DNA from: Amphiscolops sp. MND2022
Lineage: Eukaryota
Direction of reading: 5' to 3'
Assembly (NCBI GenBank): GCA_964187785.1
Contig: OZ076412.1
Coordinates: forward strand, 72,602,001 to 72,666,000
DNA length: 64,000 nt
The notes beneath the pieces are model-generated. The model made no database searches, was not told the DNA's origin, and saw nothing but the letters and a program-made list of their open reading frames with translations. Made by a program: the position numbers and the translations under genes. The first letter of the stretch is position 1, and every line of letters begins with the position of its first letter. Below are positions 1,991 to 40,326 of this stretch, piece after piece.

Positions 1991-2032
1991 AAACATACTC
2001 GAAACGTGAGAACATCGTCCAAAACTTACTAA

Positions 2033-7200: not shown

Positions 7201-8188
7201 CCTTTCTTTGCATGCCTTTTCTAAATGACTTTTCTGCATGCAATGACTGCAAAAAGGCATGTCCTTTTTTTACAGTCCGTCCCTAAATGCCCCGCTAAAC
7301 CTCAGGCATAATAAGTGAGAACTCTATCACCGCCTTTCTTAATGTCTTTGCTTCGAGCCGCCCCAGAGAAAGACTAAGTTGGCATTCCCACATGCCTTGC
7401 TGTTTGCCCTAGCCTCTGCTCTTTCTCAATACTGTAGTTGAGAATCCTCTTGCACAGTTCCGTGTAGTCTCCAGAAGTGTTGAACGACTCCTGAACAATG
7501 AATTGTTCATACTGCCCTGGAAGACCATTCAGTATCAGCGCATTAAATATTGCTGGGCCCAGATTCTCACCTGCTTGTTGTAGTCGACTGTACAATTTTT
7601 GGGCTCTGATGAAAAACCAATGGATATCTTCGCATTCTGTCAACTTCAATCGCGCCGGTTAAGCAACTATACTGACAACAGTTGGCGGCTCATTGCTGCG
7701 GAATCGATCCATCACAGAATTCCATGCTTCCTGGCTATCGCTCATTCCTTCTGCATTCACAGTTGTCATCAAGGTCGTTAAATCCCGAGCTAGAGCCAAA
7801 TAACACCAAACAATGTTGTTTCAGTTTGTCTTCTTTTCAACCTTGAATCGATTTTGCTCTTGCTGAACATTGTGCGCATCTTGTTGCTTATCTGAAGTGT
7901 TTTCTGCGCGATTTCGAGGCCTGACTATGAAATCTTTTTCTCCCATTAATGTTTTGTAGAGACCCTTCGTCTGCATGAATGCAACGAATCTGGATCTCCA
8001 AGGTGAAAAATTCTCCGATTTTCCAATAATTGTAGCCATTTGAGACTATTGCTGTCAGTTGTCATCACTCTTTATCTCTCTCGAGCTGCTCTGTACACTT
8101 TCAAAGTTGAATGCAGAATGTTCAGAACTTTGAATCGCTTGTGGTGATTGGGATCTTGCTTCAACTTCGGAATACTATGCCCATAACC

Positions 8189-8463
8189 TGTTGGTAAAAG
8201 ACTTGGTAAGGAGCAATCTGTTCTCGAAAAATATTATTCGTTGTGATATTTACAAGTTAAGAAAAAAGTTAATACTGATTACAACTTCTTGAGATGCGTT
8301 AGACTTGATTAATTAATAAATATGTCAGCGATAATTTAACGATCAATTAAAAAAGTAGCCTCTCATAGTTACTAAGTAGCGATAAATATATCCGTGATTG
8401 AAGGATTCTTTTAACTTATACGCATCTGTCAAGTATGACCTGTGTGAGATCAAGCTGTTAACA
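8189..8463 (-). repeat. Copia 5' LTR
   Basis: Direct repeat of 4009-4283, adjacent to the PBS at about 8175-8188. Confidence 0.9.
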
Positions 8464-9089
8464 GTTATTCCGCCGGTTGAGTTAATACACTGCTCTAGAA
8501 GTTGTTCGAGCGGTCATCTCTCCTTTTAATAGCTCAAATGCCCGCTCATGCGCTTCTGGTCACATCTTGTTTGTATCTGTTTCAAACAATTGGCATAGAA
8601 TGCCTGATTGGGTTTGAGAATTATGACGAACTTTAACAAGTGAAAACATGTGATAACGGGAAAAGATAACGGAATCGATAGTATAGATGTAGCAGGTGAT
8701 TAACAAAGGAAGAACAAATGTAGTTGATTAGGTATCTATCAACCAATAGCAAGACATTTGTTAGTTGTCTCATTCCACTTCAGTTTATCAATCTACTCGA
8801 CTGATAATATCCCAACAATTTGTCAAATAGGCTTGTATTTGCCAGCAAAGACGGTCACAAAGTGTTCAAAACAAGCAATCATTTAATCATCAAATCCTCG
8901 CACTATCTGAAGAAAAGTTGGAAACTTAAACAAACAGGGGAAGAAAAACAACAAACGGCGAAAATACGATTTGCATGGTACAGGTTGTCTTTTAGGGTTT
9001 GTTTTTGCGTGATTGTATTCAAAAGCATTGTTTTGCAAATGTCGTTTTTTCTAACGTTGGAACTAGAAACTTGGAATTCACCACTGTTT

Positions 9090-9641
9090 TCATCCAAGAC
9101 TGCAAAATACATTAAGCAAATTCAAAGATAGCTTTTCAGACGATTCAACGATACATTCGTTCGAGCTCTTTTTTTCAAATTTTAGCCTAAGTTTCACCAC
9201 TTCATTTTCACGTTTCAAGAATTTAAAAGTACTTTTTTTACAGACTCTAGCAAGAATGGTGACCAAATATTTGTTTGCGACGGAGCAACTTGTCAACTCT
9301 GTGGAACTTTCTCCCATTCTGAAGTCGGACCTGGAGAATGGGGTAGGAAGCAATGCAATGACGGCAATGGGTTTTTCGGTGACACTGTCGTTGTAACGGC
9401 GCCTCTTCAGGTTCTTCAGATAGTAGAAATTCAAATCATGGGATTCAGTTAGTTCATGTTCACATTGCTTCTCTACAACAGATTTGGAAGTTAATATTGG
9501 ATCTAATCGATCAACCAGAAGACTATTCTTTACCTCTTTACTCACAGTTCGTCTGATGATTTGAATCAGAGAGGAATATTCCAAAACTTTGAAAAGTTTT
9601 TGACATTCAAAATACCAACTATTCCTCACTATGTTCCTCAC
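9090..9641 (-). CDS. Unassigned 183-aa ORF (possibly transposon-derived or an exon)
   Basis: ATG-initiated ORF that is long for this AT-rich background. No recognisable motif. Confidence 0.25.
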   Translation of the reverse strand: MRNIVRNSWYFECQKLFKVLEYSSLIQIIRRTVSKEVKNSLLVDRLDPILTSKSVVEKQCEHELTESHDLNFYYLKNLKRRRYNDSVTEKPIAVIALLPTPFSRSDFRMGESSTELTSCSVANKYLVTILARVCKKSTFKFLKRENEVVKLRLKFEKKSSNECIVESSEKLSLNLLNVFCSLG

Positions 9642-11582
9642 TAATTGTGAATATTGTGATTGAGTTCAAATCACTCAGACTCTCATATCAGTGTTCTAAA
9701 AATTCTATAGGCTTATCGAAGAGTTCAAATTAAGTTCACGAAGAGGTTTCAAAATGCAAGCAAAATGGCATTTGACGGTTTATAAAATTTTCAAGGTGTT
9801 GTTAGAAAACCTCGACGTCAACAATATTTACCAGTGACTTCACTATTCAAGGCTACCAATTGCGAGCAAGTGTACATTTATACTTTCTCAATACATTTTA
9901 CATATTTTATAAAATCTGTTGTTTTGTACCACTAAAACTAAACGGAGATCCGTAAATTGTGACTCACAAAGGTATGAGAAAATTGAGTATACGTCTTATT
10001 CAGGGAGCAAATTACGAGGAAAAATACTAGAGCTATTCCCGGTTGTTAAAAATCAGCGGAAATCTTGGTTTTATGATTCAATTTTCATTTTTGAGATTGC
10101 AATTTCTCGTTCTCACTGTATATTCGGTTTAATCTTTTATTCGGTTTTTCTAGTTTCAAACTCGGTAGTTGTAGGGGGTTTTCTAATAAAACCAAATTGG
10201 TAAAATACCAATCGGAGACAGGGGGTTTTTCGGATTTTTCATACTCAGTACTGCTGTTGATTTGCCATTCAAAACTTCAGCGAGTCCACAGGTTTTTCAG
10301 CCTGACGATGCGTAGCCAGCATGTATGCGAAGCAGGTCTCTTGGTTTGTTCGGAGTTTCAAGAGTAATAGGCTTTTCACTCACAATCGCTTCAATATTTT
10401 TATTTTCCGCCCACATATAATGGGGAAGGAAAATCATAATCTGTGTTGCGTTTTTTTTCCAATTTTTGCCAAATCTCCACGATCTTCATCCGCTACTTGA
10501 CTATTTCTGAAATTACTTGAATATTTCTAGTAAATGCAAATTGATTTCATTAATAAGTTCTAAGTTCATCGTCTACATTAGCCTTCTAACTATCGCAACT
10601 CCATTGCTTAAAATTGCAAAGTTCAAATCCAAGTATCTTGAGAACTACTAGGAAAACAAAACATTGTCAGCTAGGGACGTTTGTTGGATTTTTTGTAGTT
10701 ATCAAAAATATTTGTTCGACTTTTCTACTAGAAAAGGTAGAAATTGTATATTCTGACCAAATTTGATCAAATTTGCATTTTTCTCGACTTTCGCAAAGTT
10801 AAAAAAGTACTTTTGAAGCATTTCGGTCAGTCATTTGCACTCACTGAGGATGCCTATATAATTTGATTGAAAAAGTTTTTCCATTCAAAAAAAAGTCATC
10901 AGTTTTCTAAATAGTTTTTATCGCCTGTCTTAACATATGTGTTTTCATAGGCCCAAAACAGAGTAAATTTTTTTTGGAAAAATTCATTAGGTTTGGGAGA
11001 TAATAAAAATGAAAAAATGGATATAAGTCTCTCAAATGTCAAAAAACTCAAAGTTAAATTAAAAGTTTCTAAAATTTGCAATTTTCAAATGGGTTGTAGA
11101 AATTTCAAACAAACATTTTTGTAGAGTACATAAAATTTTACAAAGCTTTTTGTAGCTGACAATTTTTTGTATTTGTGACAGTTTGCGAGTTATTTGGTTT
11201 TGAATTTTGTCATTTTGTGCATTGGAGTTGCAATATTTTAGAACGCTACTGTATTTCTCACACTCCGTCTGTAAAGCTTTTTGGCGATAGCCATCGATTT
11301 CGTAGGCTGATGTGGGCAGTGTGTAACAAACGGGCGACTGTTGACTGTGATTCAGGAGGCCCGAGATAATTCTGCTCTATTAGGAACTAACTGATGTTTG
11401 TCGACAGTGTAGCCTTCACGGAAAACCACTCAAGGAAGTACTAAGATAGACCAAAAACTTCATGTAAGTCTTTTGGCATCTTTTTGTACCATATTTTCTT
11501 TCATGTACATCGCTAAATCCATAAGTCGACGAAAAACGCTATTTCGACAGGGGAACAACTATGTTTTCTGTCATTTGTGTCA

Positions 11583-12359
11583 CCCGGGTTGACCACCATA
11601 CGAAAAACATGTAGATCATAAAATGCCATATATGGTGTTTATGAAATCAGTTCAGCCATGAAATGACAATACAAAAAGATCTATGGTCATTTTATGAGAA
11701 ACATGTTTCCCATACTATGGTCATTTTATGGAACGAATGGTTTCCATAGTTTGTTCAAACTATGAAAAACGTGCTTTTTGAACGAGTTTTCTCTGTCAAC
11801 ATTAATTAGGCAGAAATTAGAATTCCTCTGTCTAACACAGTGACTTTTTTCGGTTTTTCATCTTTAAAACTTCAAAAACATACTTTAAAAACATGCATTC
11901 CATGAAATAACCATACTTTGAAAAAATGGGTTCAAATTATGTTGACCTTTCAGCAAAAGTGACCACTTCCAGAAAAAATGATGAGTCCTAATATGACTTG
12001 TATTTTGTGAGGATAGTAACAGAAGAGCAGGTTTCATCAAAGTGTCATACTTCAAACAACATGATTTCCATAAGAGGGCCATACTTAAAAAACATGGTAT
12101 CCATAGAATGACCATACTTGAAAACATGGTATCCATAGAATGATCATACATGAAAACATGGTTTCCATAAAGGGGCCATACTTGAAAACATGGTTTCCAT
12201 AAAAGGGCCATACAGTTATATGAAATCATGCAATCCATACAATGATCATATATGGAAAACATTAAAGTCATAACAAGAACATAAAATGTTTTTTTTTGTA
12301 TGGCAACTAATTTCCATCTATGGAAACATTTTATGGTTTGCATGTCAGGTCAACCCGGG
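11583..12359. mobile_element. MITE with CCCGGGTTGAC TIRs and an internal minisatellite (CMC/EnSpm-like by termini)
   Basis: 11-bp TIR and a 2-bp direct flank (CA/CA). Internal tandem units of about 30-33 bp (CCATACTTGAAAACATGG...). Confidence 0.7.
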
Positions 12360-12590
12360 CAATGAAGTTTGTTGGCTCGACACATATTAGTCGTGGATCT
12401 GTGCGAAAAACTGTAAAATGTTCGAATGATCTAATAGGCTGTTTGTGTGTTTTTTAAAAAATTTGGCCCACCTGTCACACTTCTGAACTCCAAGTGCCAG
12501 TGGCAACCGGAGTTCAGGGGAAAATTTGTGTTTCAGCCTATTTTTCAATACCAAGATTTAATTGCTAAATCATACCCCTTGCTGGTCCTC

Positions 12591-20071: not shown

Positions 20072-20804
20072 GTTAGTTTGCACAATTTATTTTCCTCGAC
20101 AATGATTTCGTCATCAAATGATGACAGCGATTTTTTCACACTTAATAAACAATTACGAAAGGCAAAAAGAATATAGGAAAAAGGAAATTTGTCTCTCTTA
20201 TCGACAATCTATCGGAGTATCTGAAGTGAGCTGTTATTTGTGTCAATGTAGCTTTTTTCCGAGCCACCGGCAAAAAAGTAATTGGAAAAAGTAAAAATTT
20301 GCAAATTATTCAATTTCAGAAAAATAGCCTTTTCTCAATAACTGAGCAACTGTTTGCAAAGTTACTGTCCCACACTAATAACACAGCAGGCCACCATTGG
20401 AAACGCATATAGAAGTTTTTTCAATGAAGCTTCAATTAAGAGTTTGATCGGCATGTGAAAGGCCCGGCGCAGCTCAACTCAAAAAAGGACGCCAACTCCC
20501 AGCCTAACTAGTGTGCATTTGAAAGCTCAGGTAAATGGCTTTTAGGAGCAGAAAACCAATTTGAGCCGCAGCTAATAATCATGGAGAAATGAAGCCTTGA
20601 AAAATTTTGCCAAATTTTTGTCAATTTTGCTACTTTTCTGTGTACTGTCGGGGTTATTCTGCTGACCGATTTTCAACACCTGTTTCTGAAACAGATGAAA
20701 AAGTTAATATTACAAATCATGTCAACTCTTTCGGCACAAACGGCAGTTTTGTTGAATTCATTGCCGGTTAATAGGAAAAATCAGAGACTGGCATTCTAGA
20801 GTGA

Positions 20805-22742
20805 TGTAGAAATTTTTGCTAGAGGGTCGGAGAGAAATCCCAAAGGCTCGATTCTAACAGAAAGGTTTAGTTTTTAGTGAGTAAGTTTCGTCCACGTATC
20901 GCGTATTCTTTTCTCAAAGTCTCTCCGGTGCTCAAGTTTCGATTCCAAAACACTATGGAAAAGTTACTTGCAATTAATACTCTAATTCAGGAATTATCTG
21001 GATATAACAAGTCGAAGGTTTCCACAGTATATAAACTCTCAATCAAATAACAATAGCACAGCAGGTGAATGAAATATATACAATAACTCGACAAGACTGT
21101 GCCAGAATCACGATTCACTCAAAGATTTCCAAGTCCCGGACTTGTAACTTATTCACTGCTCTCACAAAGCAGTTAAGTCAAATTCGATCTCGAGTAGGTT
21201 TCTTGCCCGCCCGCGGCTCAACTTACTCTTGACTTCGTAATCGTTCTTCTGTCTCAATTCGGTCTCCTTTTCCCTCCCTAAGATATTTATTCATCAGCCG
21301 CATTTTTGTTGTACCGATGTCGCTCTTTTATTTGCATGCTTTTATAAATCATGTAATTTCATTCCTTTTATGGCATGGTAGCGCCCTAGTCATATTTCGG
21401 CCAGACATACTTCGCCGCCAACGTCAAGTAATTCACATCTTGTCCGAAGTCCACATTTCAATAATAATTCAAGTCACCCGAGATATCTTTAACATCGAAG
21501 AAATCGCTCAATGACCTTCAATTACATGGTTTACATGCTTTCTACGTGTAAGGTGTACTTTTCTGTCATTCTGATTGCAATACATCGCGAATCGTTCCGC
21601 CTGACTGAAATGCATAAATTATCGCTTAAAGACACTGATTTACATGTTTTATTGTACGTTTTCCTCTAGGTTCCGGGGTTACATCTAAATTGACCTTGAG
21701 GTCCATCTGTGACCTTGAAGTTATTTGTCATCATCTAATGTCACTACATGCCAAGTTATATCGTCCTAGGGTCAATGGTTCCCGAGTTACATGATATGCG
21801 TATCGTTTGTTTACTTAAGGCTGTCACCCCCGCATGGGTTACAAATACGGTTTCATTCACATTAAAAATCGACTACATTCATTATTCCGGTTCGTTTGAG
21901 ATATTACAAGCCAAGGTCAATGTCTTTTATCGGTCGGGCCCGCGCGTCCGGTCCCGCGTGCCTTAAACAAACATTACTCCGCTCGCGGTGGACCGATTAA
22001 TGTATCTTCCATGTATATTACTTAGGGTTACTAGGTAAACATCTTGGGTAAGTTTCGTGATCTTCGGGCCATCCGATGGCTATTTACATAACATTCGGGG
22101 TTTATTTACATAGGGTCCGTGCTCCTCCTACGCGCGTCGTAGGTTTCCGAAAATGTGCGCAAACGGCTTAATATCCTATGGGCTATCAATTCCATATACA
22201 ATACGACTTACTCCGTGCTTGGTCGACGAGTTCGTAGGGGGGTCGACCTAGGTCACCTCCGGTGCTAATAGCCCGGGGCTGGGGGGTCTCGGCTCGGTTC
22301 TGCTTTTATAGGCGCGTGGCATAACAGCTCAGGTATACGTGTGCCAAATTTCAGGTCTCTACGATAAATAGTCTTTTTGAAAATCCCGACTGGGGGGGGG
22401 TTCGCCGGTTTTGTCACACTTGGTTTTCCCGGGTGGTATCTTAGAATATTTTCGCTTGGAAGTGGGACTTAGTAAAATTCGCTCCAAGTGGTCGATTCTA
22501 ACTTAGCTGATTCGAACAATTTCGTTGTTGACGTCGATTCTATCTTACTCAAACAATCAAATTTACTCTTTCTATTATTCGTATACCAAAACCATTAACG
22601 AAACACGTCTACTTCGCCTTTTCAGCTGTTTTTACTATTCCGACGGTTTTTAAAACGTGATTAACATAGTTCTGCCTATCGTATGTACTTCGCGCAAAAA
22701 TGATGGGATTTTTCTAAAACGCCAAAATCTAAAAATTCTACA
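20805..22742 (-). repeat. 3' LTR (1,938 bp)
   Basis: Near-identical to 27430-29367. Preceded on the minus strand by the PPT AGAAGGGAAGAG. Confidence 0.97.
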
Positions 22743-22969
22743 CTCTTCCCTTCTGGACTTTTATTCTCCCGAATAAACTTAGCGGTATTGTCATTGGCTG
22801 AATCGTGGGATCTAGGTTAAACATATATAAATGTGGGGGGAGGATTCGGGATTGGTAAAAATGATTTCGGACTAAAAAATAACACCGATCGTTGATAATA
22901 TGTACAGTGTTCCTGAAAGAGTATAGCATCGAATAAAAAAAACAATTTAAATATCAAATAAAACATAAC

Positions 22970-23272
22970 TCATTTGTGCACCAGGGGAGGTCGAAGAAAG
23001 TCAACCATATACTCGAGCAGACTGGTGACATCCTCAATTTCTTGATCTTTCTGGTGGGTTCGTATTATGGCCCAGTCATATAAAAAATCGAATAAAATAT
23101 TCCACAGCAATGTCCTCGGAGGTATTGTAATTACTTCTTGACAATAGAGATCACGACAGAAAATGTCAACGACGATAGGTTCTCCATCGAACCAGCATCT
23201 AATCCGATCCAATCTTACCGGTCTGGTTCGGTCCGGTAGGGGCCAGTCAAAGAAAAGTTTTCTGAAAGCCAT
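22970..23272 (-). CDS. Accessory ORF A of the LTR element (100 aa, unknown function)
   Basis: ATG-initiated intact 303-nt ORF (MAFRKLFFDWPLP...PLVHK), immediately preceded by an acceptor-like tattgttcttgcaattgcatAG. Confidence 0.55.
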   Translation of the reverse strand: MAFRKLFFDWPLPDRTRPVRLDRIRCWFDGEPIVVDIFCRDLYCQEVITIPPRTLLWNILFDFLYDWAIIRTHQKDQEIEDVTSLLEYMVDFLRPPLVHK

Positions 23273-23642
23273 CTATGCAATTGCAAGAACAATAGGTATC
23301 AAACGACGGGTTATTCTTTATGATAGATGCGTTTCTTTATCCAACTTTTATTTAGAGAGCCATTTAGAGGGTAAACAAAGATTTTCCTGTGGTCTTATTC
23401 TATATCGGCAATTCGGGTACGGACTTTCATGGTTCCCTACTTGCTTGCTTAGTTATTCACGATTAGACGTCGTCAAAGAATCATAATTAAATGAAGTGGG
23501 ATTTTCGTCGTTGGAAGTTTTGTTTACTCGACATATTTACTCTTTTACCACAGTCAACTTTCGCCAGCTCGGAGTTTCGGTACTGCTTAATTATACATCC
23601 ATACGCTTTCCTCTACGCCTAAATCAAAACGAGAATAACAAC

Positions 23643-23945
23643 ATGGCACAAGGTCCATTCCTATTGAGTCTGTATTGGGAATCTCAGTACTTCCGCGTGG
23701 TGTTCGAGATCACCCGTATGGAAATTGCAGAGCATCACGAGGTCCAGCTGACCGTGGAGGGCGAATTGGGCGCGTTATGTCTGGACTACCTTAGCCCTGG
23801 TTGGGTAGAATTCGTCATCTTCCTGAGGAACCTCGCCACATCGGAGATTGGTCTGGTGGGAGTGCAAAAATTTCGTCTCCTCATTGCCCGCCAAAAACTC
23901 TGGGGTGCTCTGCGGGAGCCAACCCCTCCACATTTCTTACTTTAA
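23643..23945 (+). CDS. Antisense accessory ORF B of the LTR element (100 aa, unknown function)
   Basis: ATG in good context (AACATGG) and an intact 303-nt ORF (MAQGPFLLSLYWESQYF...PPHFLL), GC-richer than the surrounding spacer. Confidence 0.55.
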   Translation: MAQGPFLLSLYWESQYFRVVFEITRMEIAEHHEVQLTVEGELGALCLDYLSPGWVEFVIFLRNLATSEIGLVGVQKFRLLIARQKLWGALREPTPPHFLL

Positions 23946-24730
23946 TTCATCCGTATAAACATCATCTGTCATCATCGACTTCCTTCGTTAAAATTGAAAT
24001 ACAGTATTCATAGCTCTCCCTCTAATTTGAGAAAGTCCCCTTTAATGCTTACGAACGAGTACGATTCAGGGTTCGGTCGAGTCTTCTAGGCCCCCTTTAA
24101 AGAAAAGGGTGCAGGGGTCAAAGAATGTAACAAAAAAATACTGCACAAAACTATATCAAAGCAAATCTGGGGGCTACGATTCATCACTAGGTACAAAACG
24201 CTGATTTTGCACCGCATCATTAACTCGGGGTAGTCATTTTAGGGAGGGGAGGTCGATTGATCGTAGATAAAAAAATATATATATATAGTCAAGGCGGGAC
24301 ACCGCTTTGATAGAAGAGTATCTCAGGGCGATTAAAACATGAGACATACTTTCTTTGGAAGGGGGAATCCTCAGGAACAGGTCTCGTTGGGTCGTGAAAA
24401 TTATACGCAAGAACATGCCTTGAGCCTTGGGGGGGGGTGACATTGTTTCGAGGCGCCGTTGTTTTAGTAATACCCCAAATTCTGATACATAGCACTGCTA
24501 ATTCAAAATTCTTTCTTCCCTTCTGCTCGCTTCGAAACAACGTCACAGGGGGGTTTTAGGTGTTCACGGGTGGCGCGTTACCTGATTTATAAAAAAAAAA
24601 CAAAAACAAAAAAATCGTAAGATTAAGGAAAGTTTCACTATGTTTCGTAAAGTCGTCAAGCCGAATCGAAGTTTCGGGTCAAATACAACTAACCAAAGAC
24701 ACGTCAATCTCCCGAAGTGATAGTTGTTCT

Positions 24731-25768
24731 TTAAGCCATCATCTTCTCACGTTTGTACGGTCCAGTGGTATCCGGCTGAGCCGCTCCGCGTTTGAGTGAC
24801 CACAATCCTGCATTCTCGCACCTCTTGTGCCGGAGAGACCGCAACCCTCGCTCCTTGAACTTTCCCAGTTCTGATTGTTGGTTCCTGTCGAACCAGTCGT
24901 CAATGTACTCCGAGCTGGAAGGTGTCGGCGAAGGGCGTTCTCCCCTTCTGCTTCCAACTTCTTCGACGTCAGTCTCGCAATTGGGAGTCGGGTTCTGCTG
25001 AGGGACTACATACACTGTAATAGCTACGTGACTCCCTTTGAAGACGTCTTTAATTAGGCTTCGTATTTCACTCCAATTCAGTTTATCCAACCCACAGCCT
25101 ATCCTCGGCAGGCCTATTCGGTGGACCCCAGACCACTCCGCGTGAGTTCTCATCTCTTGCAGCGACGTTTTCACGGATTCGTAGGTCGGTTTCTCGAAGT
25201 ATCGTTGTTTGGTGACCAAGTGATACACGTAACGACGTTCTCCTTCAATCCACTGCGCAAAAACTGGCTGTCTCTTGTGGTTGACATCCTTTGGATAAGT
25301 AGTGGGATACCTCGTTTTGACTTGCTTGGCAACTCCGACCCCCATGTGGAAATCTGCCGAAACACAGTGAGCCAAACAACCTTTGGACGAAAATAGCTCT
25401 CCCTCGATCTCTTTGTACTTCAGGTTTCCGCGTTCAACGTCGAGGTCATCATCGCCAAAAAGTGTAGTCTGTCGAGGTTTCAGGGTAGTAACGATGGAGC
25501 ATCTGCTGCGATCACACCTGTACTTAGACTCTGTTGTCGATACCATGCGGAAATCAGCATTTGCGTCGACTATCATTGCGTCCCAGCGCCTTGGTGGCGG
25601 TTTCTCTCCGGAATCCCAGCTTGGATTCCTGCTCTCGGGAGCGCTCAAGTGCTGAGTGGAGGATGCCGACCGTGAGGGTTCAGTCTCCGCGCTTTCAAGA
25701 CTGTCACTGGTGCTTCGCTGGTACCAAATTCCTCCGTCTTCGCCCCATTGCGATGTAACAACTCTCAT
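24731..25768 (-). CDS. 345-aa ORF with a TARG1/OARD1 (Poa1p-like) macrodomain
   Basis: Contains EIEGELFS..LAHCVSADFHMGVGVAKQVK..YHLVTKQRYFEKPTYESVKTSLQEMRTH..LPRIGCGLDKLNW, closely matching human OARD1 motifs (AHCIS.D..MGAGIA; YYLITK..SHKPTY; PRIGCGLDRLQW). Domain at about 25000-25425. Confidence 0.92.
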   Translation of the reverse strand: MRVVTSQWGEDGGIWYQRSTSDSLESAETEPSRSASSTQHLSAPESRNPSWDSGEKPPPRRWDAMIVDANADFRMVSTTESKYRCDRSRCSIVTTLKPRQTTLFGDDDLDVERGNLKYKEIEGELFSSKGCLAHCVSADFHMGVGVAKQVKTRYPTTYPKDVNHKRQPVFAQWIEGERRYVYHLVTKQRYFEKPTYESVKTSLQEMRTHAEWSGVHRIGLPRIGCGLDKLNWSEIRSLIKDVFKGSHVAITVYVVPQQNPTPNCETDVEEVGSRRGERPSPTPSSSEYIDDWFDRNQQSELGKFKERGLRSLRHKRCENAGLWSLKRGAAQPDTTGPYKREKMMA

Positions 25769-25770
25769 TT

Positions 25771-27222
25771 TCAGCGGTTCTGGGACAGAGGAGGTATGGA
25801 CAGTTCGTCTCTCCCAAAGTCAAAAATCATTCTATGCTTTTTCACGAAGTTCAAGCCTAGAATAACGGATGGCTCGCAGTGGGGTACCACCACAAATTCT
25901 TCCTGCTCCTTCAAGGGTCCCAGCTGCAAATTCAGTCGGGTTAATCCTTTAGTCGTCACTGGTTGGCCGTCTACAGACCGCAACTCTCCATGAAATTCTT
26001 CGACCGCATCGGGGGGTCTAAGCGATTCCATTGTACTTGAGTCCACCACGTTCACGCCAGCTCCCGTGTCCAACAAAATGTCCATCTCTTTCTCCTCGAT
26101 TCGGGCTTTCACAAAGACACCACTGTTACAACCAGAACAGTCTACCACACGCACAGCGTTCAACGCCTTTCTTTCAATTGCTAAGCCAGCCCTCTCAACA
26201 ATTTGTGCAGCTTTCTCTCTTGTCAACTTCCCATGCACATCTGGAGCGTCTTCGACCACCAGCTGCCGTTTGGGGCATTGTTGAGGAAAGTGTCCAAAAC
26301 CATCGCAAACAGGGCAGATATCGGCTACAAAACCGCCATCCCCCTTGAATTTTTGTTCGGTCACCACAGTGGTGGCCTCGCGTTTATGTGGGTCTGTCAT
26401 CCCAGCCTGCTTCTCAGGCCTCACAGTTGTTGACAGAGTTTCCATGAAAGTCATCATCTGCGTCATCTGGTCCATTCTTCTAGTGAGCAGATGTAAACCC
26501 TCTTTCCACGGTTCGTCCGAAAAGGCACGAACGTCACGACTGGGTTCCTGCTGTCTCCCAAACTCGTCAAACCGCTCTAGTTCATTCCGTGAACGGCCAC
26601 GTGTTATTCGAGCGATAACTTCCAAGTCAACGGCCCTATTCACTAGATCCCCAAATGTTTGTGGGTTTTCTTTCAACAACTGAACTTCCAGTTGTACATC
26701 GCTCAAACCCTCGAGGAACTTCTCGCGGAACAACTCGTCTCTCGTGTTGGGGTCCTTCTCTGAGTAGGCAATTTTTCCAATGTTTCTCACTCGTCGGGCA
26801 AATTCCCTCAGGGTTTCCTCTGGTTGCTGTCGAAGTTTTCTAAATTCTGCTTTCCCCAGACGGTCATTTCGCATCATCCCCATTTCTCTACCCAGGTAAT
26901 TGAATAGTGCAGCTAACGTAGGTGCATCTTCCCCATCCACTTGCTCTCTCAGTTCTCGAGGCGCAGCGTTGTACTCGTCCAATGCGTACTCAATCAAGCA
27001 CACAGGCACAGCTTGCAGACCTTGCAACTCAGTCCATCCGTTGGCTCTGCCAACTCTGTAAAAGTGCGTTTTCCATTGGGACCAATCTGGATAGTTCTGC
27101 GAGGGGAAGCTGTCAGGTCTGATTGCTCCATTGCCAAACAGCCGATTCTCATTCCCGTTGAGGCCCTGTATCACCCCTTGGGCGACAGCCTCCATTATTG
27201 CAAGTCGCTGTTCGTCTTCCAT
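25771..27222 (-). CDS. Gag-protease polyprotein (capsid-like Gag, CCHC zinc knuckle, aspartic protease)
   Basis: Intact ORF from the first ATG at 27222. CPVCDGFGHFPQQC knuckle and LLDTGAGVNV protease active site. Stops shortly after the protease. Confidence 0.93.
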   Translation of the reverse strand: MEDEQRLAIMEAVAQGVIQGLNGNENRLFGNGAIRPDSFPSQNYPDWSQWKTHFYRVGRANGWTELQGLQAVPVCLIEYALDEYNAAPRELREQVDGEDAPTLAALFNYLGREMGMMRNDRLGKAEFRKLRQQPEETLREFARRVRNIGKIAYSEKDPNTRDELFREKFLEGLSDVQLEVQLLKENPQTFGDLVNRAVDLEVIARITRGRSRNELERFDEFGRQQEPSRDVRAFSDEPWKEGLHLLTRRMDQMTQMMTFMETLSTTVRPEKQAGMTDPHKREATTVVTEQKFKGDGGFVADICPVCDGFGHFPQQCPKRQLVVEDAPDVHGKLTREKAAQIVERAGLAIERKALNAVRVVDCSGCNSGVFVKARIEEKEMDILLDTGAGVNVVDSSTMESLRPPDAVEEFHGELRSVDGQPVTTKGLTRLNLQLGPLKEQEEFVVVPHCEPSVILGLNFVKKHRMIFDFGRDELSIPPLSQNR

Positions 27223-27410
27223 ACCCAAAGCGTTACTTCAGGCACCAACTAGTTGCATTAGAAAAACGTCTCTGTTCTGTTGTACAAGAACGTTCTCAGT
27301 CGATCAACCTCATCGGATAATGTGCTTGTTTTGATCGCGTCGTGAAGGGATTACAGCTAAGTCCCAGTAAAACAATTCCAAAATAACAGCGATACAGAAC
27401 TACGAAAATT

Positions 27411-27428
27411 GCCCACCCAGGAGCGCCA
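27411..27428 (-). promoter_or_regulatory. Primer-binding site, tRNA-Asn-like
   Basis: TGGCGCTCCTGGGTGGGC lies 1 nt inside the 5' LTR. Its complement GCCCACCCAGGAGCGCCA resembles the 3' end of animal tRNA-Asn(GTT) as recalled (…GCCCACCCRGGRRCG-CCA). Confidence 0.7.
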
Positions 27429-27429
27429 C

Positions 27430-29367
27430 TGTAGAAATTTTTGCTAGAGGGTCGGAGAGAAATCCCAAAGGCTCGATTCTAACAGAAAGGTTTAGTTTTT
27501 AGTGAGTAAGTTTCGTCCACGTATCGCGTATTCTTTTCTCAAAGTCTCTCCGGTGCTCAAGTTTCGACTCCAAAACACTATGGAAAAGTTACTTGCAATT
27601 AATACTCTAATTCAGGAATTATCTGGATATAACAAGTCGAAGGTTTCCACAGTATATAAACTCTCAATCAAATAACAATAGCACAGCAGGTGAATGAATT
27701 ATATACAATAACTCGACAAGACTGTGCCAGAATCACGATTCACTCAAAGATTTCCAAGTCCCGGACTTGTAACTTATTCACTGCTCTCACAAAGCAGTTA
27801 AGTCAAATTCGATCTCGAGTAGGTTTCTTGCCCGCCCGCGGCTCAACTTACTCTTGACTTCGTAATCGTTCTTCTGTCTCAATTCGGTCTCCTTTTCCCT
27901 CCCTAAGATATTTATTCATCAGCCGCATTTTTGTTGTACCGATGTCGCTCTTTTATTTGCATGCTTTTATAAATCATGTAATTTCATTCCTTTTATGGCA
28001 TGGTAGCGCCCTAGTCATATTTCGGCCAGACATACTTCGCCGCCAACGTCAAGTAATTCACATCTTGTCCGAAGTCCACATTTCAATAATAATTCAAGTC
28101 ACCCGAGATATCTTTAACATCGAAGAAATCGCTCAATGACCTTCAATTACATGGTTTACATGCTTTCTACGTGTAAGGTGTACTTTTCTGTCATTCTGAG
28201 TGCAATACATCGCGAATCGTTCCGCCTGACTGAAATGCATAAATTATCGCTTAAAGACACTGATTTACATGTTTTATTGTACGTTTTCCTCTAGGTTCCG
28301 GGGTTACATCTAAATTGACCTTGAGGTCCATCTGTGACCTTGAAGTTATTTGTCATCATCTAATGTCACTACATGCCAAGTTATATCGTCCTAGGGTCAA
28401 TGGTTCCCGAGTTACATGATATGCGTATCGTTTGTTTACTTAAGGCTGTCACCCCCGCATGGGTTACAAATACGGTTTCATTCACATTAAAAATCGACTA
28501 CATTCATTATTCCGGTTCGTTTGAGATATTACAAGCCAAGGTCAATGTCTTTTATCGGTCGGGCCCGCGCGTCCGGTCCCGCGTGCCTTAAACAAACATT
28601 ACTCCGCTCGCGGTGGACCGATTAATGTATCTTCCATGTATATTACTTAGGGTTACTAGGTAAACATCTTGGGTAAGTTTCGTGATCTTCGGGCCATCCG
28701 GTGGCTATTTACATAACATTCGGGGTTTATTTACATAGGGTCCGTGCTCCTCCTACGCGCGTCGTAGGTTTCCGAAAATGTGCGCAAACGGCTTAATATC
28801 CTATGGGCTATCAATTCCATATACAATACGACTTACTCCGTGCTTGGTCGACGAGTTCGTAGGGGGGTCGACCTAGGTCACTTCCGGTGCTAATAGCCCG
28901 GGGCTGGGGGGTCTCGGCTCGGTTCTGTTTTTATAGGCGGGTGGCATAACAGCTCAGGTATACGTGTGCCAAATTTCAGGTCTCTACGATAAATAGTCTT
29001 TGAGAAAATTCGACTGGGGGGGGGGTTCGCCGGTTTTGTCACACTTGGTTTTCCCGGGTGGTATCTTAGAATATTTTCGCTTGGAAGTGGGACTTAGTAA
29101 AATTCGCTCCAAGTGGTCGATTCTAACTTAGCTGATTCGAACAATTTCGTTGTTGACGTCGATTCTATCTTACTCAAACAATCAAATTTACTCTTTCTAT
29201 TATTCGTATACCAAAACCATTAACGAAACACGTCTACTTCGCCTTTTCAGCTGTTTTTACTATTCCGACGGTTTTTAAAACGTGATTAACATAGTTCTGC
29301 CTATCGTATGTACTTCGCGCAAAAATGATGGGATTTTTCTAAAACGCCAAAATCTAAAAATTCTACA
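27430..29367 (-). repeat. 5' LTR (1,938 bp)
   Basis: Near-identical to 20805-22742 and followed by the PBS. Confidence 0.97.
28929..28935 (-). promoter_or_regulatory. Candidate TATA box of the 5' LTR promoter
   Basis: TATAAAA on the minus strand within a GC-rich segment. The equivalent site in the 3' LTR is at about 22305-22311. Confidence 0.45.
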
Positions 29368-29793
29368 AGTGACAACAAAAGGAGTCTTCTGGAAAATGGA
29401 AAATTGCCAAGCAGACACTAAAAATGCAGACAGAGAATTCTTTTTGTTCTGCGTAAATTCTCTCTTTCCCAAGCGTTTCTCCGCTGCCCACGGATTAGTG
29501 AGTGATGCATAGATGAAATATTGTTTCGAAAATGCTAATGCTTGTGAATGTAATAGAAGGTAGGTACTTTGTTGACATACACGTCTATATGACAAAAATG
29601 AACATTGAAAGCGAAAAGGTGAGGCAAAAACGTATTTAACTCTCTTCAGTCAATTATCAATTTCCTTTAAAACGTTTAATGAAAGGAATGAAGGTACTGC
29701 AAGCTCTGACTCCAAATAGTTTTTCATGAAAACTTTCGAAAACATCTTGAGAGTATCCACGCGTTTGAGCGGTATACTTTTATTGTGTTTTAG

Positions 29794-32288: not shown

Positions 32289-35200
32289 AATGTATATGAA
32301 AATATGTACACTATCTTCATTGAGTTATATGTGGTGGGAACAATGGTTGCAAATTCCTGAATTTTTCTGCTATGGTGAAAATTTCAACGTAATTGAAGCA
32401 AATAAATGAACGTTTCAAAGCTGTATTTATTTTTCATCCGACTGATGTTGTGTGTACTTACAGTGTTTGAAACTCTGAAGTAGTCTAATAGGCAGACTAG
32501 CTATAAAGCAAGACCAAAAACCTGAAATATACCGAGAAATTGAATTATTCGACCTATCAAAATTGAGTATAAACGAAAAAATAAATTGAGCAAACTATAG
32601 AAAAACAACAGAAATAAAAGATTTCTACAAATCCAGAACTTCCAACCCAGTTTATGTACAGAGAAAATTTTCCGCCTGAGTTTCCAGACAATTCATTTTC
32701 TCGTCCAAAGGTATTCCATATGCAGTGGTTCTGTTCCAAAAAATCTTGGAGTAATTAGTTGGAAAAACAATCTTTGAAAGTGCCACTATGTGGCCATTAA
32801 GTTCAAAGTGCCTGCCTCCTAAAACATTGATCTTCAAGAAAACATTTAGAGCTGTTGCTACACAAGATACAGTTATTACATAGAGTTGTGTGCTGTAAAC
32901 TACGTGCTAACTTTAGTTATCTGATCTTCAGTTTTAATTCAACTTTCTTACTACTTTCGTCAGTCTATCATATGGCGCAGTCAGCAACCTAATGGACACA
33001 CACGCAGACCCGAACACATCGGTACAATCGGCTCAAACAGCGGTGAACCAAATAACAATGAACCAGACAACCGCTGATCGATTGGAAAAAATAAATACAA
33101 AGTCCCGATTTTATCGGATAGAGATACAGACTTGACAAAAACAAACCCGCGAATGTGGTGGAAACAATTTTCAGAGTATACACACCTACGTATAACCGAT
33201 ATTTCGACGAAATAATGGATCAAGGTATCAACCAGATGGACCTACACACAGTATATCACATCAAGGGAGACGTAATCTGGGCACTGGGGCCAAAAGCCAA
33301 ACACGAAAGTATGAGAGGCCAGTGAGGCAGAGAACTGAAAGACGTTGACCCACCAGAGCTACAGAAACTATTCAAGAAAACGTTAAAAACAGCGAGAAAC
33401 GTATTCCACAGTCGAGCCCAAGTTTTCAACATCAAACAGGAAAATAACGAAACACTGAATGAGTATTGGAAACCGGGCATTAACCGGGTAGACTTCTACA
33501 AGGCAATACTAATGGTCCAGGGACAGCCAATAGAATTCATCATTGACATTGGCTCTCCTGTATCGATCATACCACCAAAAATTAATCCAATAGTAGTACG
33601 CAAGACCACAAAATGCTTTGTAGACGTGAATAAAAACAGAATGAAATTCAAAGGCGAAGCCATGGTGGAAATAGAAACGAAAAAAAGCAAGTCCTGCCAA
33701 TACTTATAACCGAAAATACAATCACACAACCATTGCTAGGTGTGGACTGGATCGACTACTTGAAAAAAGGGTTACGAGGAAACAAAAACACGAACATTAT
33801 CCGACATATCGAGACCGACGAAAGACGGGAGAAGATTATCAACGAATACGAAGATTCATTCAAAAACAATCAAACAATCGAAAATCTAACCATAAGTATT
33901 TAACTGAGAAGTGACTCAGAACCAATACAACAAAAAGGACGGCTAGTATCTATCCACGTTCAATAAAGGTCAGACAAGAACTGGAAAAATTGATTGAGAA
34001 AAGACACCTGGAAAAAGCAGACAAAACCACCGAAAACTGTTTTATCTCACCGGCCGTCATAACCATAAAGAAAAATGAATCGGTGAAAAAAGCACTCGAT
34101 TCGAGAAAACTAAATGTGGCCTGCGTAAAAAGAAAAACCGCAATGCCCAACATGGAAGAATTAATCAGTAAAAGATCAGCGGAGATTACTAAAAATGAGG
34201 GAGAAATTCGGATCTCAAAAAATGATTTGGATTATGCGTATGGACAGGCGAAATTATGCAAAGAAGCAGCACGACTTTGTGTATTCTGAAAGACTGGGGG
34301 TGACTTTACCGGCCACTATCGTTTCAAGAAAGGCTTCCACGGATTATCGGATATCACCAACCCTATTCAAAGAGCACATCGACAAGGTACAGGAATTTGA
34401 AACACCAGTTTGGCTAGACGATATCATCTGTGTAACCAATGAAACAACTGATGAACACGTGAAGTACTCACTAAATTGCAAAACGCCGTCTACAGAGCAA
34501 GTGAAAAGAAAACTGAGCTCTTCAACCAAGAACAAACTTGGAAGGGCTACCACATTAATCAAAGTGGAGTAAAGCCGATAAAAGACAAGACCGAAGCCAT
34601 CACGAAGTTGAATACCCAAAGAATGTTAAAGAACTAAAATCTTTCCAGGGCTCGATACAACACCTGTCAAAATTCATAAACAATCTTTCCAAGAAGACCG
34701 ATAGAATGAGAAAACTCCTGAAGCAGGCGATCCACTAAGAGTGGACACCCGAGATAAATGAAGATTTCGAGAACTTTAAGAACGAAAAAACAGAATCACC
34801 GTGCCTGGCTCACTTCGACCCGAAGATAGACAATTACGTAACAACCGATGCCTGCAACACTGGGTGGGGAGCAACACTGTGGCAGAAGGAAGGAGAAAAT
34901 TCTGACCAATTGCATTCCCTAGTAGATTTCTCACCGACTGTGAAAGAAGATACGCTTTTATTGAGCTAGAGATACTAGAAGCGTTAAGGGGGTTAGAATA
35001 TTTCAAATATTCCGTTTACGGAAAAAGGGTCAATCAATTAACTGACCACCGAGCGCTTCAGCCGTTGTCAAAAAAATAGGGGACATAAACTGTACAGTGC
35101 TAGATTAACACGGTGGTTGGACAGACTGAGCCATTTTGATGTAAATGTGCAGTATACGGCCGGCAAAAACATCCCGTTGGCGGATACTTAAGCGGACATC

Positions 35201-37451: not shown

Positions 37452-38779
37452 AAAAACTAGCCTCAAAACCGATAAAGTTTCCGCTCTCGAGAAAGCCAGA
37501 AGAACAGCGCAAGCCAACTAGCCGCTGCCGCCGATGCGGAAAATCGTTTAAAAACCATCCCATGTCCACTCACACGATTCTTAACTACTCCCTTCCTGAG
37601 GCTGAAGAAGGACAATCCCGAGAAAGCAACTTTGAGTGCCAACGTACCCTCTGGAAGCAAAGACTGGTTCCCCTAACCCGGGAAGGGGGAATGTGAAGAA
37701 GGTGCCACTATGTGGCCCTTAAGTTCAAAGTACCTGCCTCCTAAAACATTGATCTTCATAAAAATATTTAGAGCTGGTGCTACACAAGATACAGTTGTTA
37801 CATAGAATTGTATGCTGTAAACTACGTGCTAACTTTAATTATCTGATCTTCAGTTTCAATTCATTTTTCTTACTTACTACTTTCGTCAGTCTATCATACT
37901 CTTGTTCGCTCAGTTTTCTATGGAATGTTTCCGGAATGAAGTCTGGTCTGTAGGGTGACTTGATGTTCAAAAATCGTTTCAGTAGCCAGTTAGTTAGTTG
38001 CCAAAAAAACAAAAACCAAAAATCCTTACGATATTCTTTCGAGATCCGGGTGTTATGCTTTCGTTTTAGTATCTTTGAAAACTTCCAAACATTTATTGGA
38101 ATGTAAGCAATGCTGTACCGGACAATTGCTTGAAGACAATTTGCAGAAATGCGTTTCCCGAATGATTTCGAGAGAACCTATTTTTGAAACGTTTTCTTTA
38201 TATTCATTCCGAGTATTTTAATAAACTATCAGCATGTTTGGCAACCAGTTTGGTATCCATATATTGAATTGGAGTGAACTCTGCCCAAAAATCTTCATCA
38301 AAGTTGATAGTAAATTTGCCGCAATTTTCGATCCGAGTGGGAGCTGTCGATCGGTCTAAAATTAAGTCTTTGGTCTGATGCAAAAATCAGTTTTTGAGGC
38401 TTTGAAGTAGCGTTCAATGCCAATATCCACGAAATTCTGTTTTCACTGAGTCGATTTTTTGTGAAGGTAGATGAACCGCCATTTTTGACATCCTGCTTCT
38501 CATCTGATAAAATTGTCAACAAAAACTTCTCCGTACCAAGGAACAAACACAAAATAAAAAATGTAGGGTTATTTTTGACGCCTTGTAACTTTTTTTGATG
38601 AAAATTCCTTCATTCAGAAGAGTTTGGGGCCGAATTTGTTATAATGTAAACAACAAACTAGCGTCATCTCCAACGTCCTATTTGAGAAGTGGTAATTACA
38701 TTCGATGAGCAGTTGAGAAATCAAAGCGTGAAAACAACGGGATCCTATTGGGGGTACAGTGGCAATTATGCAGCATGTA

Positions 38780-40326
38780 AACTGTCTAAAACGTATGTGA
38801 AAAATCGAAAAAATCTTTTATTGTCACTTAGATTGAAAACCAGAAAAAATGATCTAAGTAGATTTTAAACGATGTTAGACGAGCTATATGTTCTAATTGT
38901 TTTCACCAAAGAAACTTTGATGTGACTTCCGGTTTCAGAGTTTTCAACTTCCGATCATGAAAATATTGTCTAAAACGTATGTGAAAAAAAAACGTTCAAC
39001 GTGAATTCCGACTCAACTACTCCAAATCCAACCAAATTTTTATTTTCAGAGAACTTTATTCAATCAAAATCTTCGGGGTCATCAAAAAATCAAGAGTATT
39101 TTATTCAAGATTCATCAAAATTATCAAGTTTATCAAGATTATTCAAGATTATCAAGAATGCCGAAGAGAGGACCCTTACTAACTGACATTGAAAAAGGGC
39201 GAATAACTGGGATGAGAGATTCAGAAAAGACCGTGACCGAAATATCGAAACAGTTGAAAAGGACATATAACTGCGTTAACATTTTTTCAAAGACAGATGG
39301 TGATTACAGACACGGAGGTGGACCCGCCAAAAAATTGTCAGAATCAATGAAAAGACATTTAGTACGACACATGAGTGGAGAAAGCCATGTTTCCCTACGG
39401 AAAATAGTCACACAGCTACACGTACCTGCAGAAAAAGACACAGTGAGGAGTTTTCTGAAAACCGAAGGCTATAAATACACTTCCCCAAAGAAATAACCAT
39501 CACTAACAGATGCAAATCAAAAGAGAAGAGCGGAATGGTCAAAAAATGTTCTCGAACAAATCACAGCTGGACAAATTAATATCGAAAATATCGCATTCAC
39601 AGACGAAAAACGTGTTTTACTGGATGGACCTGATGGATGTCGAAAGTATTGGCAATTGGAAGGAGAAGAGGAAAGGTGGTGTGGAAAAAATTTTTTTTGC
39701 TCGGGAGTTATGGTTTGGGCAGGCATTGGATCACGAGGAACAACAACAATACATTTTTGTGAAAAGAATGTCGACTCGCAGTTTTATCAGAGAATTCTCA
39801 GTGAGAATTATTTACCGTTCCATCAACAAGGATTCATTTTAATGCAAGATAATGCAACACCTCATATATCACAATCAACACTAAAGTTTCTGGAAGACAA
39901 AAATATCGACGTCCTGGAATGGGCACCTCACTCTCCAGACTGTAACCCCATTGAACGTATTGCGATAAAAAGAGTGTGGGAAGATCTGGAGATAGAACTG
40001 ATTCAAAAATCAGTCAGGAGCTTTCCAAAACGTCTCATTCAAGTAGTGGCGAATAGAGGAGGGCCAACTCGAACCTATTGAGTTAGTTTCGTACAATATT
40101 GTTTCTATTTTCGTGAAAATTGTTAAGTTTTCCATATTTTTCACATACGTTTTAGACAGCCCTGAACATCGAATTTGACCAAGAAAAGCAAGGAAATCAT
40201 TCAAGAACAGTGAAAATACTATCATATGGACTGCTTTACTGTTGATATATACCGTTGTTCTAATTTTTCTGTAATTCAGATTTTCTGGCCCAAAAACGTG
40301 TTTTTACATACGTTTTAGACAGAGTT
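38780..40326 (+). mobile_element. Tc1/Tc3-like DD34E transposon, defective
   Basis: TA flanks. The terminal motif CTGTCTAAAACGTATGTGAAAAA occurs at both ends and again about 165-190 bp inward on each side. Confidence 0.85.
39158..40081 (+). pseudogene. Tc3-like transposase with one premature stop (TAA at 39494) and a deletion after NPIE
   Basis: MPKRGPLLTDIEKGRI HTH start; FTDEK..DGPDG, QDNA and SPDCNPIE motifs, with 34 residues between D and E. The segments on either side of the stop are in the same frame. Confidence 0.9.

Follow-up and report, generated by a model that had tools for sequence, protein, structure and literature searches.

A young LTR retrotransposon copy encoding Gag, protease and a TARG1-like macrodomain, and its probable place in a semi-autonomous family

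The window analyzed in this work is a stretch of 64,000 nucleotides (nt) of contig OZ076412.1 from Amphiscolops sp. MND2022, and all positions are numbered along the whole stretch. At 20805-29367 it contains a long terminal repeat (LTR) retrotransposon that encodes Gag, an aspartic protease (PR) and a TARG1-like macrodomain, and in which no reverse transcriptase (RT), RNase H (RH) or integrase (IN) was found. The element is a young, minus-strand copy of an RT-less family whose intact members encode a Gag-PR-TARG1-like macrodomain polyprotein. We consider it probable that this family is semi-autonomous and uses RT, RH and IN supplied by a partner element, with a counter-defence role proposed for the macrodomain.

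Element anatomy and the polyprotein gene

Every long open reading frame (ORF) of the element lies on the minus strand, so the element runs in its own orientation from 29367 to 20805 and the repeat at 27430-29367 is the 5' LTR. Each LTR has 1,938 bp, with TG at the start and CA at the end, and the BLASTN alignment of the pair (20805-22742 against 27430-29367) shows 1,939 columns with 10 mismatches and 2 gaps, corresponding to 99.38% identity. A previous reading made from the letters alone (the sequence-only reading) had counted about ten differences between two 1,938-bp LTRs and described a recently integrated copy; the alignment bears out both statements. The pentanucleotide AGTGA is found on both outer flanks, at 20800-20804 and 29368-29372, as a 5-bp target-site duplication. 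The primer binding site (PBS), of 18 nt, TGG-initiated and with the sense sequence TGGCGCTCCTGGGTGGGC, is located at 27411-27428 and separated by one base from the LTR; the polypurine tract (PPT), of 12 nt and with the sense sequence AGAAGGGAAGAG, adjoins the 3' LTR at 22743-22754. The interior between the LTRs has 4,687 bp. Direct repeats with TG..CA ends, a 5-bp duplication, a PBS and a PPT, which together define an LTR retrotransposon structurally, are all present, as the sequence-only reading had listed them (a perfect AGTGA duplication, PBS, PPT and a 4.7-kb interior). Furthermore, the PBS and PPT are unchanged in eight of eight copies, including the divergent sibling L007, and each of the seven relatives, which belong to a single assembly, has a different 5-bp target duplication. 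Invariant PBS and PPT together with a separate duplication per copy indicate that these signals are not due to chance.

The PBS presumably resembles the complement of the 3' end of animal tRNA-Asn. With regard to tRNA priming, no tRNA genes were found in the window or in the scanned loci, and Rfam, tRNA and tandem-repeat scans of the element gave no matches. A search for a second copy of the element within the window found none. The features of the element, in its own orientation, are the following:

29368-29372, no strand: target-site duplication AGTGA, upstream side in element orientation, same as 20800-20804
27430-29367, minus: 5' LTR of 1,938 bp, 99.38% identical to 20805-22742
27411-27428, minus: PBS, same in all eight copies
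27223-27410, minus: leader between the PBS and the gag ATG, 95-99% identical to the copy L009, against 89% over the whole element
25771-27222, minus: Gag-CCHC-protease part of the polyprotein gene, 483 amino acids (aa) up to a premature stop
25778-25785 (approximate), minus: frame break in the polyprotein gene, with the downstream frame -1 relative to Gag-PR
24731-25768, minus: downstream part of the polyprotein gene (linker, macrodomain and tail), 345 aa from the first ATG
22755-24730, minus: 3' interior without RT, RNase H or integrase according to Pfam and tblastn, containing the small ORF
22970-23272, minus: small conserved ORF of 100 aa, with a ratio of nonsynonymous to synonymous substitution rates (dN/dS) of 0.11
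22743-22754, minus: PPT, same in all eight copies
20805-22742, minus: 3' LTR of 1,938 bp, delimited by the LTR alignment
20800-20804, no strand: target-site duplication AGTGA, downstream side, same as 29368-29372

The leader is presumably the place of a candidate packaging signal. The Gag-PR ORF, of 483 aa counted from its ATG, shows a CCHC knuckle (26275-26316) and the protease motif DTGAG (26056-26070), and according to Pfam it matches Asp_protease_2 (E=1.3e-9) and gag-asp_proteas (E=1.5e-7). Relatives of Gag-PR were found in 1,116 of 1.84 billion representative proteins. The long ones are of Ty3/Gypsy type and only 22-31% identical to the window sequence: P0093 and P0120 show the architecture Gag-PR-RT-RNase H, P0147 contains Integrase_H2C2 and rve domains, and about 430 aa of the window Gag-PR align with P0120, P0093 and P0147 at 22-27% identity. 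Ty3/Gypsy elements have a Gag in which the CCHC knuckle precedes a retropepsin; the window Gag-PR has this arrangement and is homologous to theirs, which indicates that the family is derived from Ty3/Gypsy-type elements. The CCHC and DTG motifs are invariant in 26 of 26 intact relatives. Structure was predicted with AlphaFold2 (AF2) for P0180, the closest intact relative of the window copy, and this model shows a confident helical Gag region at about residues 40-225.

Gag-PR and the macrodomain are one polyprotein gene of about 830 aa, which is split in the window copy. Proteins P0180-P0189 (829-840 aa) span both ORFs end to end, and in 37 of 38 junction-spanning family proteins the junction lies in a single frame that leads from the protease through a short conserved motif to the linker and macrodomain. 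Furthermore, the C-terminal residues of these polyproteins are the same across many contigs. The sole exception at the junction, P0245, is the window copy itself, with the same Gag-PR and a contig that matches the window exactly. In this copy the frame breaks at about 25,778-25,785, where Gag-PR reads ...IPPLS and then QNR-stop; the macrodomain frame, -1 relative to Gag-PR, is open from 25819, which gives a 46-nt overlap. A programmed -1 frameshift or reinitiation at the junction was considered and rejected: no heptamer is found in canonical phase and the relatives are simply in frame, so the offset is read as a mutation. The two indels in 2 x 1,938 bp of LTR correspond, by arithmetic, to about 1.3 indels expected in the 2.5-kb ORF since insertion, and a lone frame break therefore fits ordinary post-insertion decay. 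The window copy was probably intact at the time of integration. The sequence-only reading had described an intact Gag-CCHC-PR of 483 aa and a separate 345-aa macrodomain gene; the two ORFs exist, but as halves of one gene that is broken here. In intact members the polyprotein starts with helical Gag, the CCHC knuckle and the aspartic protease, continues through about 115 aa of disordered linker to the TARG1/OARD1-type macrodomain and ends in a tail.

A family of copies without reverse transcriptase and integrase

The part of the interior not covered by the two large ORFs yields 39 six-frame open pieces of at least 30 aa. Compared with Pfam at E<=1, none of them matched RT, RNase H or integrase, and the matches obtained were four unrelated marginal ones. 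When five Ty3/Gypsy polyproteins and the ORF pieces of L003, a Gypsy element described below, were used as tblastn queries against the window, only Gag-PR and the macrodomain were matched inside the element. The sensitivity of both searches, which agree with the absence of the three enzymes noted from the letters alone, is that of open pieces of at least 30 aa and of Gypsy-type queries. The element thus lacks the pol with RT, RNase H and integrase in order that characterizes autonomous Ty3/Gypsy elements. It also differs from large retrotransposon derivatives (LARDs) and terminal-repeat retrotransposons in miniature (TRIMs), whose interior has no coding capacity, by its selected ORFs of about 830 aa and 100 aa.

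The window matches exactly, via L013, contig ctg182152 (155 kb, about 105x coverage) of ENA assembly ERZ25074608. Six other loci of this assembly (L001, L002 and L008-L011; 77-113x) show the same arrangement of LTR, Gag-PR-macrodomain and LTR without RT and IN. In total, RT and IN are lacking in seven of seven copies with DNA sequence, window included, all of which have the same Gag-PR-macrodomain junction and ORF end; this count rests on seven copies, not on a genome-wide census. Within copies the LTRs are 99.0-99.8% identical, while nucleotide divergence between copies ranges between 4 and 15%, and the window LTR shares 84-88% identity with those of L001 and L009-L011. L008 (5209-10918) has an intact 831-aa ORF and LTRs of 585 bp that are 99.83% identical and lack positions 137-1470 of the window LTR, which indicates that insertion does not require about 1.3 kb of the long LTR. 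At the protein level, three clusters defined at 90% identity contain 87, 22 and 25 members, that is 134 distinct variants on separate contigs; 26 of the 78 family proteins fetched are full-length and about two thirds are truncated. The family is abundant and comprises several sub-lineages, each recently inserted.

Internal deletions of LTR elements are common, and in this family, too, deletions make the 3' interior differ from copy to copy. The window copy could thus have lost RT, RH and IN in a one-off event after insertion, its relatives being full-length autonomous Gypsy elements. We consider this extremely improbable, as the same structure is found in seven of seven copies with the same junction and ORF end, the sub-lineages 4-15% apart all have young LTRs and their own target duplication, and polyproteins of about 830 aa with the same C-terminal residues occur on many contigs. 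RT-less relatives, young LTRs, separate duplications and 134 variants refute a one-off deletion for practical purposes. The view of the sequence-only reading that this is a lineage rather than a simple deletion derivative is upheld by the six RT-less relatives, and these six are copies of the same internal structure, which it had proposed to count in the genome.

Selection was analyzed by domain with the Nei-Gojobori method, between four intact copies and the two pieces of the window. Approximate dN/dS values were 0.15-0.40 in Gag, 0.13-0.29 in the protease and 0.20-0.27 in the macrodomain. Fisher p values range from 2e-10 to 1.4e-3 across these three domains, and both non-overlapping pairs, L008-L009 and L010-L011, are significant. 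By contrast with these domains, values in the linker (0.6-1.0) and tail (0.4-0.8) are not significant and cannot be distinguished from neutral. Purifying selection acts on Gag, protease and macrodomain. The sequence-only reading had proposed to compute dN/dS across copies and had presented a lineage that builds its own capsid and keeps its cargo genes intact; with 0.13-0.4 in Gag, PR and macrodomain the first part is supported, whereas the macrodomain is not a separate cargo and the frame of the window copy is broken.

Long intact ORFs under purifying selection are also what a domesticated host gene family would show, in which Gag-PR-macrodomain ORFs had been co-opted in the manner of Arc or PEG10, had multiplied by duplication in the host and had lost their mobility. 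However, each copy sits at its own locus between LTRs that are nearly identical, its PBS and PPT are intact, and its 5-bp duplication is shared with no other copy. Furthermore, hundreds of variants, with about two thirds of the fetched proteins truncated, are the pattern of a replicating transposon, and we give domestication hardly any credence.

The 3' interior contains, just upstream of the PPT, a sense ORF of 100 aa (22970-23272) that is intact in the window, L008, L009 and L007. Between the window and L007 this small ORF shows 74% aa identity and a dN/dS of 0.11 (Fisher p=8e-15), while the Gags of both are only 41-48% identical; it is a real conserved accessory gene under purifying selection. 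No match to it was found in Pfam, NCBIfam or PDB, and its AF2 model is poor, with a predicted local distance difference test (pLDDT) score of 58. Its region is deleted in L001, L002, L010 and L011, and absence from four inserted copies indicates that insertion does not require it in cis. The 3' interior (22755-24730) is variable: L001, L010 and L011 are without element positions ~5409-5765 and 5895-6546. Two antisense ORFs were rejected as genes, that at 23496-23945 with a dN/dS of 0.5-0.9, not significant, and that at 23163-23486 because stops interrupt it in L007. Thus, both 100-aa ORFs that the sequence-only reading listed as kept exist and the sense one is conserved, but the antisense one is broken in L007.

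The window is 96-100% identical to L009 over element positions 5400-6300 (window 23068-23968), against 89% overall, and the rank order of pairwise dS changes between domains. Both observations suggest that the copies are recombinants of co-replicating sub-lineages. L007 (8117-15755, same assembly) is a sibling with the same PBS, PPT and small ORF and with LTRs about 85% like those of the window over the alignable stretches; however, its Gag is the divergent one mentioned above and a 387-aa ORF (10987-12150) is found in place of PR-macrodomain. A search for homologues of this ORF gave no match anywhere. The LTRs of L007 are 96.3% identical to each other, which indicates an older insertion, and the same signals with other ORFs indicate that one set of cis signals serves several coding modules.

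When metagenomes were scanned for the LTR end together with the PBS, one contig of 1.8 kb and no autonomous partner were found. This contig, L012 (GenBank WGS contig JAAUXW010035804.1), has the same 22-nt LTR-end-plus-PBS string and a Gag 43% identical. L005 (ENA ERZ1742291), with Gag 66% and protease 44% identical, runs to the contig edge. These likenesses indicate that the lineage is present in other samples. The best Gag relatives are located on short contigs (L004, L005 and L006; 1.5-2.2 kb), where nothing is readable past PR. Two proteins were followed and discarded in the search for a helper: following P0199 gave L007, likewise an RT-less sibling, and P0053 is only a distant Gag-PR.

Among the distant Gag-PR relatives from other samples, P0070, P0139, P0104 and P0084 have 790-940 aa, no RT domain and other additions, namely the p58 C-terminal domain of integrase, a C2H2 zinc finger or an N-terminal Cdc14-binding domain; by their domain content, Gag-PR-plus-cargo elements may be widespread. 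Elsewhere in the window, tblastn detected one decayed RT/RNase H fragment at 34.6-34.9 kb, within 34300-35190 (plus), a decayed Gypsy remnant, unrelated to the element, with RT_RNaseH and RT_RNaseH_2 pieces across several frames. A 141-aa ORF at 39656-40081 (plus) matches DDE_3 transposase (E=1e-7) and is probably a fragment of a DDE-type DNA transposon. A 204-aa ORF at 55776-56390 (minus) shows a weak, sub-threshold spectrin-repeat match (E=2.5e-4) and may be a host exon.

The TARG1-type macrodomain

The 345-aa ORF consists of a disordered linker, a TARG1-like macrodomain encoded at 25007-25423 and a low-confidence tail. Its match with Pfam Macro is weak and sub-threshold (E=0.005), whereas phmmer against the PDB structures of human TARG1/OARD1 (C6orf130) gave E=2e-28 over the whole domain and the NCBIfam model of the DarG antitoxin gave E=2.8e-13. 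In the P0180 model, pLDDT is above 90 in the macrodomain and the helical Gag region, below 30 in the linker of about 115 aa and below 50, of low confidence, in the tail. Foldseek placed TARG1 first (template modeling score 0.84, 35% identity, E=8e-13), followed by DarG, with viral macrodomains far behind at 12-17% identity. The catalytic dyad of TARG1 is formed by Lys84 and an acid at position 125 (PMC7050489); the Lys codon at 25208-25210 and the Asp codon at 25085-25087 align with these residues, 41 residues apart, and both are kept in 26 of 26 intact relatives. By sequence, fold and catalytic dyad, the domain is clearly a TARG1/OARD1 homologue, with a predicted ADP-ribosylhydrolase activity.

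Retroelements may carry passenger genes, as in the retroviral oncogenes and the maize Bs1 element. The macrodomain could accordingly be a host OARD1/TARG1 cDNA, recently acquired and carried neutrally with no role in the element cycle: it comes from a cellular family, is intronless and is located where pol would be. Macro-domain ORFs of cellular origin are also mentioned for fish epsilon-retroviruses (Basta et al. 2009, cited in PMC4977317). However, the nearest macrodomains outside the family, the named ones being of animals (rotifers and Drosophila), are 34-45% identical, and none lies between 45% and 75%, in a database in which intron-split host genes may be poorly represented. This gap indicates that the macrodomain was not recently captured and that any capture is ancient; a recently transduced host gene would be nearly identical to its cellular counterpart. 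Selection on the macrodomain (p<=1.4e-3 in two independent pairs), the conserved Lys and Asp, the in-frame fusion kept in 37 of 38 proteins and the presence of such a domain within the pol of another Gypsy element also speak against a passenger, and we regard this explanation as unlikely.

That other element is L003 (ENA ERZ26859043, a different sample; element 102-12548), a Gypsy element with LTRs 99.45% identical. It shows RVT_1 at 5122-5766, an ORF at 6010-6888 (P0018) that joins RNase H to a TARG1-like macrodomain, and integrase at 7377-7883. A maximum-likelihood tree groups the macrodomains of the family, that of L003 and one long-branch protein apart from 39 other OARD1-like proteins, mostly stand-alone, with 95/93 support. 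On this basis, the family macrodomain may have descended from a macrodomain-bearing Gypsy pol, although this descent is not secure.

If so, the family could be a deletion descendant of an autonomous Gypsy element of the L003 type (PR-RT-RH-macrodomain-IN) that lost RT-RH and IN, is now a plain parasite of its parent and retained the macrodomain because it was already an element function. The L003 gene order, with RNase H and macrodomain in one ORF followed by integrase, and the grouping of the retroelement macrodomains in the tree favor such a history. On the other hand, PR is only 29% and the macrodomain 42% identical between L003 and the window, the linker and tail have no similarity to the L003 pol, the LTR ends and PBS region of L003 are unlike those of the family, the tree node has a weak value in the Shimodaira-Hasegawa-like approximate likelihood ratio test (SH-aLRT), and no such parent was found in 184 kb of genome or among the protein representatives. 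We regard it as a serious possibility that falls short of an even chance; moreover, it is an origin story for the semi-autonomous family rather than a contradiction of it.

In the window, 38747-38857 (minus) encodes 37 aa like the C-terminal end of the macrodomain (43% identity, two in-frame stops, E=1e-3), which is a heavily decayed remnant of a related element or else a chance match.

Proposed cycle and comparison with known systems

For the semi-autonomous family we propose a cycle whose packaging, reverse transcription and integration steps are taken from the established cycle of LTR retroelements. The family would supply at least some of the Gag for the particles that package its RNA, and its own protease would mature them. 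Reverse transcription would be primed at the invariant PBS and PPT by RT-RH supplied in trans. The IN of the partner, which would recognize the same cis signals, would carry out integration, with TG..CA ends and 5-bp duplications. Since it is fused to Gag, the macrodomain would enter every particle in amounts equal to Gag. There it could strip off ADP-ribose that ADP-ribosyltransferases of the host had attached to proteins of the particle or to the RNA or single-stranded DNA formed during replication.

TARG1 reverses ADP-ribosylation of protein Glu/Asp and of nucleic-acid ends (PMC7050489) and, as these sources report it, thymidine-linked DNA ADP-ribosylation (PMC8501950, PMC11102865), and viral macrodomains are described as countering host antiviral ADP-ribosylation (PMC7232374). 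By analogy, we propose the macrodomain as a counter-defence enzyme, comparable to those of RNA viruses but belonging to the TARG1/DarG class, whose substrates also include nucleic acids. A further step would place it, as a particle-delivered enzyme against ADP-ribosylation by which the host would restrict capsid or replicase proteins, RNA or single-stranded DNA of retroelements, within a cooperating retrotransposon consortium, with a division of labor and not simple parasitism: the family would give capsid, protease, ADP-ribose eraser and small accessory protein, and the partner RT and integrase. This last reading is tentative, and we think it rather doubtful.

Several points weigh against the semi-autonomous, counter-defence interpretation. 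Scanning 184 kb of the genome did not reveal an autonomous partner, and no long protein among the 1.84 billion representatives is more than 31% identical to Gag-PR. In the AF2 model, confidence is low over the protease. As regards selection, dN/dS between dispersed copies blends selection in the active lineage with neutral decay, and the copies are mosaic, so the values are approximate. The inner tree node of L003 plus family has an SH-aLRT of only 40 with long branches, which makes common descent insecure. Finally, the counter-defence role is drawn from analogy only, host ADP-ribosylation of retroelement parts being hypothetical.

Substrates of the TARG1 class include single-stranded DNA, the intermediate that retroelements make. 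If the domain is active, the family suggests that hosts restrict retrotransposons by ADP-ribosylation and that a transposon encodes a countermeasure. If this holds, it would parallel RNA-virus macrodomains and the bacterial DarT/DarG conflict. The consortium or counter-defence reading, if true, would be the first indication that LTR retrotransposons and their hosts are in an arms race over ADP-ribosylation.

Classical non-autonomous LTR elements include BARE2/BARE1, ETn/MusD, MaLR/ERV-L, LARDs and TRIMs, which are mobilized in trans via shared LTR ends, PBS and PPT. Apart from BARE2, they have lost all coding capacity. BARE2 lost gag (PMC9744471), whereas in this family gag and protease are maintained by selection and new coding capacity has been added. 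The closest likeness in architecture is with RLG_Sabrina_SA and RLG_WHAM, "semi-autonomous" Gypsy elements of wheat and barley that are mobilized by RLG_Wilma and persist beside this autonomous partner (PMC9744471). As in those elements, RT and IN are absent across the population, an intact GAG-protease ORF is kept and copy number is high (PMC9744471); here this is seen in seven of seven copies, in the 26 full-length proteins among 78 and in the selection on gag and PR. Sabrina variants also include siblings with other coding segments instead of GAG-Pro (PMC9744471), comparable to L007. The Gag-Pro semi-autonomous architecture is therefore already known from wheat (PMC9744471). In contrast, Sabrina_SA and WHAM are plant elements with a known partner and no enzymatic accessory domain, whereas this family shows a TARG1-type fusion and a small 3' ORF.

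With human TARG1/OARD1 (PDB 4J5Q/4J5S/2L8R) and DarG the macrodomain shares the ALC1-like class, the minimal macro fold and the conserved dyad. However, TARG1 is a cellular protein of about 150 aa that stands alone and DarG belongs to a toxin-antitoxin system, while here the domain lies inside a retroelement Gag-protease polyprotein. Coronaviruses, alphaviruses, hepeviruses and rubella virus are likewise described as genetic parasites with an ADP-ribose eraser in a replicative polyprotein (PMC7232374), but the RNA-virus macrodomains are MacroD-like, 12-17% identical and part of the non-structural replicase rather than of a capsid-protein fusion. The fish epsilon-like endogenous retroviruses, as mentioned in one source, are reverse-transcribing elements that encode cellular-type macro domains and also CNPase ORFs (Basta et al. 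2009, cited in PMC4977317); they differ in being Retroviridae of replication-competent type, with pol and env and the accessory ORF separate (PMC4977317). L003 is like the family in having a TARG1-like macrodomain within a Ty3/Gypsy polyprotein, and differs in its autonomous-type coding content and in its sample of origin.

A full-text search of the literature on macro domains and retrotransposons gave, as sole precedent, the passing mention in fish epsilon-retroviruses (PMC4977317), and a Gag-fused enzymatic accessory domain selected across hundreds of copies has no counterpart in the searchable literature. As far as checked, what is new with respect to these systems is the selected TARG1-type macrodomain fused to Gag-PR, together with the conserved small ORF. 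With many young copies, several sub-lineages, cargo-variant siblings and signs of recombination, the family is a natural system for the persistence of non-autonomous elements.

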